Positions 44,332 through 46,491 of a stretch of DNA of 64,000 bases are shown one piece after another; the stretch's first letter is position 1, and every line of letters begins with the position of its first letter. This DNA comes from Phyllobates terribilis (lineage: Eukaryota). Position numbers and translations under genes: made by a program. Under the pieces are notes generated by a model. That model made no database searches. It was given only the letters and a program-made list of their open reading frames with translations, and was not told the DNA's origin. The stretch spans positions 194,618,001-194,682,000 of the forward strand of contig NW_027362770.1 in NCBI RefSeq assembly GCF_046119375.1, in the 5' to 3' direction.

Positions 44332-44720
44332 TCACTTGCTCTTGCTCGCTTTGCTTGGCGACTTGCTGCTCTCGGTCTTCTTGGGCAGTAGCACGGCCTG
44401 GATGTTGGGCAGGACGCCCCCCTGGGCGATGGTCACCCCACCCAGCAACCTGTTCAGCTCCTCGTCATTGCGCACCGCCAGCTGCAGGTGCCGGGGGATG
44501 ATGCGGGTCTTCTTGTTGTCCCGGGCGGCATTGCCGGCCAATTCCAGGATCTCAGCGGTCAGATACTCCAGCACAGCGGCCAGATACTCCAGCACAGCGG
44601 CCAGATAGACCGGAGCGCCGGCGCCCACCCTCTCGGCGTAGTTGCCCTTGCGGAGAAGCCTGTGCACACGACCGACCGGGAACTGCAGTCCTGCCCGGGA
44701 TGAGCGGGTCTTGGCTTGGC
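44332..44720 (-). pseudogene. H2A: Histone H2A, 5'-truncated (no ATG, residues ~1-11 lost), with a 7-codon internal duplication
   Basis: [69 protein letters not shown]...LLPKKTES. Confidence 0.93.
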
Positions 44721-46491
44721 TGGTCGGGGCCACTTCTGGATGGCAGACAGTTTCTCAGGATCCATTTGTAGGCCGGTCTGAGAGATTATGTAGCCCAGAA
44801 ATGGAAGAGAGGTCTGCTCAAAGGTGCACTTCTCATATTTAGCGTAGAGGTGGTTCTGCCTGAGCCTGAGCAGGACCTGACGAACGTCCCTCCGGTGAGT
44901 CTGGAGATCCGGAGAGAAGACCAAGATGTCGTCCAGGTACACCACCACGCAGGAGTAGAGAAGGTCACGGAAGATGTCATTGACCAACTCTTGAAAGACG
45001 GCAGGAGCGTTACAGAGACCGAAGGGCATTACCAGGTATTCATAGTGGCCGTCCCGGGTGTTGAATGCCGTCTTCCACTCATCCCCCTGACGGATACGGA
45101 CCAGGTTATACGCCCCACGGAGATCCAGTTTGGTGAAGATTCTAGCCCCCCTCAGGCGGTCAAATAATTCAGGAATGAGCGGGAGGGGGTATTTATTCTT
45201 CACTGTAATCTGGTTAAGGCCTCTATAATCTATACATGGACGGAGTGAGCCGTCCTTCTTTTTGACGAAGAAGAAGCCTGCTCCCGCCGGGGAGGTAGAT
45301 TTCCGGATAAATCCCCGGGCCAGATTCTCCTCAATATACTCTGACATGGACCGGGTCTCCGCTGCGGACAAAGGGTTCAAAGTGCAGGGTGCACTGGTTT
45401 ATGAAGCCCCGAGCTTGAGCGGAGTCACCTCCGAAACGAGGAGGTGCAGAAAACCGGGGTCCGGGACAGGAAGCCATGGTATTGGTGGGCAGCGGCGCTG
45501 CCGGGTTGCGAGTCATGACACTAGCGGTGGTTGCAGGTGGAGCAGACAGAGTGTCCAGGCGAGAGTTGACACTCCGCAGGTGACTCAGGATGGACTCCTG
45601 TTGGGACCTCTGACGGGAGGGACAGTTCATGACATAGGTCCGAGAGCGAGGGAGCTTGGGTGCCACCGGATTCCATGGCCCGAGCAAACTGTAACGGGTC
45701 TGGGAGGTGGAACCTCTGAGCAACTATACAAGTGGGCGGTCCTTGTAAGGAAGCGGGTGGCTCCCAGGGGAGACGGGCAGGTAATCACGGCAAGTGACAG
45801 GGACAGTCTCTGGGTAGAAGGGCAGGTAGTCACGGCAAGTGACAGGGACAGTCTCTGGGTAGAAGGGCAGGTAGTCACGGCAAGTGACAGGGACAGTCTC
45901 TGGGTAGAAGGACGGGTACTCACGGCAAGTGACAGGGACAGTCTCTGGACAGGCAGGTGGTCACGGCTAGTGACGGCAGAGCCTCCAGGTAGGCTAGCAG
46001 GCAGGTAGCAGATGAGCGCTCCCTGGTGAGCAGACAAGAGTCTCTGGACAGGCAGGTGGTCACGGCAAGTGACGGCAGAGCCTCCAGGTAGGCTAGCAGG
46101 CAGGTAGCAGATGAGCGCTCCCAGGTGAGCGGGCAAGCTGGTCCATAGACAGACTGACAGGTGTCGGAAGGCAGACCGTCGGACCGCAGGCTTGCAAGCA
46201 GGTAAACGGATATCTGGCAGGTATCAAGCAGGAATCTGCCAGGTGACTGGCAGGTAACAGGCAGGAATCTGGCAGGTGACTGGAAACGGGACCTGAGGGC
46301 TGAAGCAGAGTGAAGGCTTTGCAACAACATTGCTCGGGCACCTCCATTTTGGAGGAGGTGCCTTATATATGGTGAGGTCCTCCGGCCATTGGCCATTGCC
46401 AGCAGAGCGGGAGGAGGACGCCGGGCACGGAGTGGAGAGGTGAGGGGAACAGCGTCCCTGCCTAGCAGGAGGCAGGGACGCCGACGCTACA
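44721..46491 (-). mobile_element. Internally deleted Gypsy/Ty3 LTR retrotransposon: 5' LTR (46491-45690), gag N-terminus, RT; RNaseH, integrase and 3' LTR missing
   Basis: LTR TGTAGC...GTTACA with CCAAT and TATATAA. gag motif [24 protein letters not shown] motifs [65 protein letters not shown] and YLDD. Confidence 0.93.

Follow-up and report, generated by a model that had tools for sequence, protein, structure and literature searches.

The described systems closest to the locus treated here are LTR-mediated retrocopies and transposon-truncated pseudogenes. In LTR-mediated retrocopies, the copy of part of an mRNA is joined to a discontinuous LTR element, and Tan et al. 2016 attributed them to template switching that yields a chimeric cDNA (PMC5131818). 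A gene captured in this manner must be enclosed by retroelement sequence, with LTRs at either end, and the microsimilarity at the switch points has a median of 6 bp (PMC5131818). The locus under study, in which a Ty3/Gypsy reverse-transcriptase (RT) fragment abuts a histone H2A coding remnant, lies in a 64-kb stretch of Phyllobates terribilis DNA, hereafter the window. From the letters alone it had been read as lying one missing G away from an in-frame RT-H2A fusion. While giving an account of the anatomy of both partners, this analysis assesses the joint between them base by base and weighs the routes by which it could have arisen; ordinary decay in a transposon-rich frog genome is the most likely explanation of the locus.

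The Gypsy and histone remnants

All features of the locus, i.e. the satellite, leader, gag, RT, H2A and stem-loop, are read on the minus strand and are given from high to low coordinates (Table 1).

Table 1. Features of the RT-H2A locus and of its histone neighbours, with positions counted within the window
Feature	Position	Strand	Remarks
32-bp satellite array, ~4.7 kb	51223-46492		adjoins putative LTR/leader
Putative 5' LTR and leader	45610..46491	(-)	assigned by position only
gag N-terminal fragment	45376..45603	(-)	residues 3-82 of related Gypsy gag-pol P0137 (1405 aa)
Ty3/Gypsy reverse-transcriptase fragment	44721..45374	(-)	fingers and palm with YLDD; stops at ...KWPRP
Joint GCCAA-GCCAA	44711..44720	(-)	G 44720 could come from either parent; frames 1 nt offset
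Histone H2A coding remnant	44332..44715	(-)	A14-K15-T16-R17 to stop codon
21-bp tandem duplication, two units	44560..44601	(-)	doubles AAVLEYL in helix alpha-2 of histone fold
Four extra codons SPSK, C-terminal tail	44350..44361	(-)	compared with TESSKASKSK tail of P. terribilis and D. tinctorius H2A
Histone 3' stem-loop GGCTCT TCTA AGAGCC	44254..44299	(-)	Rfam RF00032; positions include ACCCA and downstream-element-like motif
Intact H3 ORF	36302-36712		
Intact H1 ORF	34613-35260		
Intact H4 ORF	27930-28241		

The putative LTR and leader span ~0.9 kb of unique sequence; CCAAT-CCAAT and TATATAA motifs lie at about 46390-46360, and tandem repeats of 45, 99 and 33 bp inside 45610-46491. The gag fragment, whose last residues are ...QCTLHFE, is 33% identical to P0137 over the residues tabulated (E 2e-4, tblastn). 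The RT starts two bases past the end of the gag fragment and in a different frame. Because the RT match in P0137 opens at residue 445, approximately 360 residues are gone between the two pieces, and the rest of gag together with the protease has been lost from the element in a separate internal gag-to-RT deletion. The RT fragment itself is recognized by Pfam RVT_1 (E 2.7e-35), shares 65-99% identity with Gypsy pol proteins of vertebrates and, in a HMMER search of the protein library, finds thousands of Gypsy pol relatives. Its identity to residues 483-700 of P0122 (XP_073522176.1), a Gypsy protein from the same P. terribilis genome assembly, is 99% (216/218 aa). After WPRP, this same-genome copy reads EGLKAIQRF, and nine aligned relatives, including P0122, all extend past W-P-x-P as ...EGLKAIQRFMGFANYYR; their shared pattern, WP.P-(EG/HS/LT)LKA.QRF.GF.NYYR.FI, represents the start of the RT thumb, and the window has Ala-Lys-Pro-Arg-Pro in that place. 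On these protein alignments, retroelement homology stops exactly at WPRP, 44721. A tblastn match of another Gypsy protein, P0139, that reached over the H2A was rejected as noise, being a low-identity gapped tail that runs through stop codons. Within the 64-kb window, neither thumb, RNase H nor integrase is present past the RT palm, and the protease is likewise absent; a blastn search of the window found no second copy of 45381-46491, and hence no 3' LTR. The Gypsy part is a twice-broken remnant and not an autonomous Ty3/Gypsy LTR retrotransposon.

The H2A remnant contains the Pfam domains Histone (E 1.5e-12) and Histone_H2A_C (E 2.3e-20) and, in protein alignment, matches dendrobatid H2A residue for residue from AKTR through TESSK, two insertions aside. 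By protein comparison, contiguous H2A homology in the H2A frame begins at 44715, and the remnant is without a promoter, an ATG and its first 11-13 codons. Motifs of the H2A N-terminal tail (SGRGKQGGKVRAK...) occur in none of the six frames of the whole window, and there is no H2B gene in any of the six frames of the same 64 kb. The larger of the insertions is the 21-bp tandem duplication, which is in frame and was resolved by TRF with a period of 21, 2.6 copies and 97% matches; it falls on a built-in near-repeat of 13 nt, TATCTG[G/A]CCGCTG, 21 nt apart, which probably provided a natural slippage site for it. None of the aligned frog H2A proteins has the AAVLEYL doubling. The same 7-aa doubling is found in two unrelated H2A proteins of environmental contigs (P0021 and P0019). 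The SPSK insertion may reflect variation between paralogues rather than a lesion. The ~129 aa given to the H2A part by the sequence-only reading are correct as a length, although the part is not clean, containing both the 7-aa duplication and the four extra tail residues.

Downstream of the coding remnant, the histone stem-loop scores 33.2 bits with an E value of 2.6e-6, the RF00032 gathering score being 34, and past it come ACCCA and a purine-rich, downstream-element-like motif, CAAGAGCCGG, that was judged by eye. Stem-loops are also present behind H3 (36.8 bits) and H1 (32.1 bits), and the 3' flanks of H2A, H3 and H1 are, by eye, alike in their sequence of stem-loop, ACC(C)A, about a dozen bases and an AGAGC-type purine motif. 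The U7-binding downstream element lies past the cleavage site of histone mRNA and is not in the mature mRNA; the presence of a downstream-element-like motif past this site therefore argues that the H2A piece comes from the genome and not from an mRNA. Intact H3, H1 and H4 genes are found 8-17 kb from the remnant, and the gene model at the locus, P0011, has as its called neighbours a histone of 136 aa and a linker histone of 215 aa. The H2A remnant is a resident of a native histone cluster that has been stretched by transposons and satellites.

The joint and its reading frames

On the minus strand at 44732-44706, the RT frame reads TGG CCC CGA CCA GCC AAG CCA AGA CCC, the same letters as in the string WPRPAK... 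from which the sequence-only reading had set out. The RT ORF is at 45380-44559 (-) and the H2A ORF at 44733-44332 (-), and their codon phases are 1 nt apart (45380 mod 3 = 2 for RT; 44733 mod 3 = 0 for H2A). Each frame is without a stop, the RT frame over 209 codons and the H2A frame over 129 codons, and the coordinates agree with the 338-aa count that had been made for a repaired ORF, i.e. 209 codons from ATG 45347 to WPRP plus 129 codons of H2A. The canonical nucleotide string for H2A A12-R17 that had been set beside the RT frame holds in its residues, as dendrobatid H2A reads ...VRAKAKTRSS, a comparison made at the protein level only.

At the joint, GCCAA at 44720-44716 is repeated by the next five bases, 44715-44711, and two readings of this repeat fit equally well. 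In one, H2A homology would extend back to A12-K13 and be one base short within the (Ala-Lys)x2 repeat; in the other, H2A would start from A14, and its first 5 nt would have been copied in when the ends were joined. The missing G that had been proposed fits GCCAA-GCCAA, but it is only one of these two equally good readings. Of the two, only the one-base-short H2A from A12 implies that the joint was once in frame. Because finding Ala-Lys codons directly ahead of AKTR in the RT frame is improbable by chance (roughly 0.2-0.5%, by this report's own rough estimate), the junction may once have been in frame, and the one-base-short reading is slightly preferred over the 5-nt duplication. That the joint is a single G from being in frame is no more than chance predicts, as one third of junctions are expected to be in frame and two thirds one base off.

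Because the same-genome Gypsy copy has Glu-Gly after WPRP, the retroelement would contribute at most G 44720 to the joint, and the Gypsy and H2A sides would share at most that one nucleotide. Of the earlier suggestion of chance at a microhomology junction, the element of chance is supported, while microhomology is a loose term for 1 nt, at most, in common. The 64-kb window contains no N. A metagenome scan with the downstream 35-mer identified nine H2A loci, all with the invertebrate-type KAKGKSKTR and thus uninformative on the vertebrate AKAK codons.

With regard to translation, the H2A frame opens no earlier than 44754 and lacks an ATG; the RT frame continues for 53 codons into H2A out of phase, up to the stop at 44559. 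A programmed -1 frameshift from RT into H2A was considered and rejected, as the overlap, read in the RT frame, is free of X XXY YYZ heptamers. Lying in a frame without an ATG, off-phase with the RT and with no recognisable frameshift site, the histone fold is predicted to be untranslatable, and a transcript from the retroelement promoter could give, at most, the RT fragment with a 53-residue out-of-frame tail. Among the 120 best relatives of the RT fragment (annotated proteins of 150-478 aa), there is no protein with a histone Pfam domain and no match to the out-of-frame tail. The sole gene model at the locus, P0011 (135 aa, H2A), obtains its start codon via a 4-nt first exon (ATGG, followed by GT, at 54704) and has a ~10-kb intron that spans LINE fragments and the satellite array; it looks like a computational rescue and not a sign of expression. 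Both parts are nearly unmutated, given 216/218 aa for the RT and zero substitutions over about 110 residues for H2A; hence, the events are recent, and the open frames reflect youth and say nothing on selection.

Origin of the junction and its alternatives

The RT-H2A junction is quite probably the accidental meeting of two broken genes, i.e. a retrotransposon-truncated H2A pseudogene, brought about by deletion at the DNA level. Some deletion or rearrangement is required, because none of the six frames of the window contains the H2A 5' part or H2B. In the order of events inferred here, a young Ty3/Gypsy LTR retrotransposon would have inserted upstream of the resident, replication-dependent H2A and in the same orientation. 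One deletion, or illegitimate end-joining, with its ends in mid-RT and at H2A codon ~12, would then have taken the 3' two thirds of the element, including the RT thumb, RNase H, integrase and 3' LTR, as well as the promoter of H2A and its first 11-13 codons, leaving RT codon ...WPRP joined to H2A around codon 12-14. Small slippage scars would have followed, during or after the joining: one at the joint, where GCCAA-GCCAA would represent a one-base loss or a 5-nt templated duplication, and a second at the built-in near-repeat, where it would be the 21-bp duplication. Two other DNA-level routes were rejected. A simple insertion of Gypsy into H2A does not fit, as the other half of H2A is absent from the window and RT, not an LTR, abuts H2A; the capture of a Gypsy cDNA at a break in H2A does not fit either, as the window contains no H2A 5' part at all.

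Retroposition by the LTR-mediated route, in which a packaged H2A transcript would have template-switched with Gypsy RNA and the resulting chimeric cDNA integrated, is a very unlikely source of the junction. Host sequence does take the place here of part of an internal retroelement ORF, and the second jump in the element, from gag to RT, is like that in multi-switch products. However, nothing downstream of H2A matches the element, the histone 3' flank there giving way to repeats that are unrelated to it, and the second LTR is nowhere in the window. The position of H2A among H4, H1 and H3 in their cluster would be very unlikely for a random integration, the downstream-element-like motif is present past the mRNA cleavage site, and the joint has, by protein-level comparison, at most 1 nt in common versus the median of 6 bp (PMC5131818).

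An assembly chimera, the joint being a misjoin of reads from two loci, is somewhat less likely still. The genome is very large and repeat-rich, and the joint is near the 4.7-kb satellite array and other repeats; yet the junction is a clean point, the coding sequence around it is unique, lacks any N and has no repeat common to both sides, and both flanks are unbroken for hundreds of bases. The published P. terribilis draft is GCA_045270155.1, which is different from GCA_046119375.1 (PMC12208295), and a search for a published description of the latter assembly found none.

It is highly improbable that the locus is a real, translated RT-histone-fold fusion gene, with its frame masked by a one-base consensus error or restored in an in-frame allele. 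An offset of exactly one base at a short repeat, an RT-frame Ala-Lys that equals H2A A12-K13, and a CCAAT/TATA-like promoter upstream along with histone 3' processing signals downstream are the points in its favour. Conserved coding sequence totalling about 2.4 kb (H4, H1, H3, RT and H2A) is free of frameshifts; the local indel error therefore appears low, and this stands against a masked frame. The RT piece, moreover, is without thumb, RNase H and integrase; the 7-aa alpha-2 duplication disrupts the histone fold, whose N-terminal tail is missing; the architecture of RT plus histone is absent among the 120 best annotated RT relatives; and the two halves are too young for open frames to signal selection. 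The suggestion that a GG-to-G error hides a real fusion is unsupported, given the duplication in the histone fold and the 0/120 RT relatives with a histone, and that of a once in-frame, functional fusion that was later frameshifted fares no better, as both partners are broken and the H2A belongs to its native cluster. That living animals carry the junction in frame, or did so until recently, with transcription from the retroelement promoter and processing at the histone stem-loop, is barely credible.

Were an in-frame product real, it would place a tail-less H2A histone fold, disrupted in alpha-2, on an RT fingers-palm fragment, and it could be taken up into nucleosomes during S phase or poison them. 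A true fusion of RT and histone would be remarkable, and this locus offers no support for one. The retrotransposon-truncated pseudogene that is preferred here instead illustrates a caution, in that young retroelement fragments in huge, transposon-rich genomes often land beside conserved genes, and open frames at such joints mimic domain fusions and draw gene models, here the 135-aa 'H2A'. It also offers a view of dendrobatid histone clusters as being pulled apart by transposons and satellites, and of the H2A alpha-2 coding region as having a built-in near-repeat that is prone to recurrent 21-bp duplication.

Comparison with known systems

LTR-mediated retrocopies (PMC5131818), maize Bs1 and yeast Ty chimeras are like the present locus in combining an LTR-retroelement ORF with a partial host CDS in the same orientation and in having an element with more than one internal discontinuity. 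However, the element and its LTRs border these retrocopies at both ends, whereas H2A here has retroelement on one side only. They lie away from the parental gene, whereas this H2A is in its native cluster with a post-cleavage 3' flank, and they have ~6-bp microsimilarity, in contrast to the 1 nt, at most, that a protein-level comparison allows at the joint. A domesticated retroelement-host fusion gene is a single ORF, whereas the frames here are 1 nt apart and the RT frame stops at 44559.

The canonical H2A of anuran histone clusters matches the remnant in its protein, which is identical from A14 to the tail, in a probable 3' stem-loop, just under the RF00032 gathering score, with a downstream-element-like motif, and in having H4, H1 and H3 as neighbours. 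Unlike it, the remnant has no promoter, start codon or residues 1-11/13, carries the 7-aa alpha-2 duplication and is without its partner H2B within 64 kb.

Transposon-truncated (unitary) pseudogenes share with the locus a host gene that has lost its 5' end and promoter and that abuts an internally deleted, 3'-truncated retroelement, as well as a point junction with little or no microhomology, slippage scars and no second LTR. The locus differs from the usual pseudogene of this type in two respects: the host is a replication-dependent histone gene within its cluster, and the two frames run in the same direction and are, by chance, one nucleotide out of phase.

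Gene models at the H2A locus and elsewhere

The public gene model at the truncated H2A locus (135 aa) is probably an annotation artefact, its start codon being reached via a 4-nt first coding exon and an intron of about 10 kb. P0122 (XP_073522176.1), an annotated protein of the same genome with a gene range of about 120 kb, combines a LINE-like RT tail with two copies of a Gypsy RT, one sharing 86% and the other 99% identity with the window's RT, and is another chimeric gene model, assembled from transposon fragments.

Neighbouring histone genes and repeats

Intact genes for H4, H1 and H3 are scattered across 9 kb of the window, and no H2B gene is found within its 64 kb. 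At the 3' stem-loop of H4, the first pair is weakened (AGCTCT...AGAGCC), and Rfam gives no report there, even at E<=10.

The minus-strand Gypsy remnant, a broken Ty3/Gypsy copy, has the array of 32-bp units immediately upstream. The satellite with a unit of about 71 bp and AT-dinucleotide runs accounts for two things in its region: long ORFs that overlap one another, reach 1034 aa and match no Pfam family, and weak matches to miRNA families. Both inverted-repeat pairs probably represent short transposons, either as copies or as their termini, and one of the arms sits a short distance downstream of the 3' flank of H2A. The 307-aa ORF has no Pfam match, and it contains a motif that may resemble the C-terminal part of hAT transposases.

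Features of the window, including the exon/intron points of the public H2A-locus model
Feature	Position	Strand	Details
Histone H4	27930-28241	+	intact
Satellite, ~71-bp unit	31251-34085		AT-dinucleotide runs
Histone H1	34613-35260	+	intact
Histone H3	36302-36712	+	intact
Inverted-repeat pair	38052-38145 / 43977-44070		94 nt, 91% complementarity
Inverted-repeat pair	40441-40585 / 41947-42091		145 nt, 92% complementarity
307-aa ORF	42341-43264	+	acidic E-rich runs
Exon/intron points, 135-aa model	54701-54704 and 44736	-	
Satellite, 32-bp unit	46492-51223		4.7 kb, about 147 units, 96-97% identical
LINE-type element and further RT fragment	57353-60142 (-) and 52059-53288 (+)		endonuclease (Exo_endo_phos) ORF and RVT_1 ORF; further RT fragment on opposite strand

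The seven-residue doubling in other H2A proteins

The doubling of seven residues seen in the H2A of the window also occurs, as AAVLEYL / AAVMEYL, in P0021 and P0019, two unrelated H2A proteins of invertebrate type whose environmental contigs are 705 and 945 bp long. That these proteins have it too suggests that either slippage or assembly error recurs at the near-repeat built into the alpha-2 coding region of H2A.
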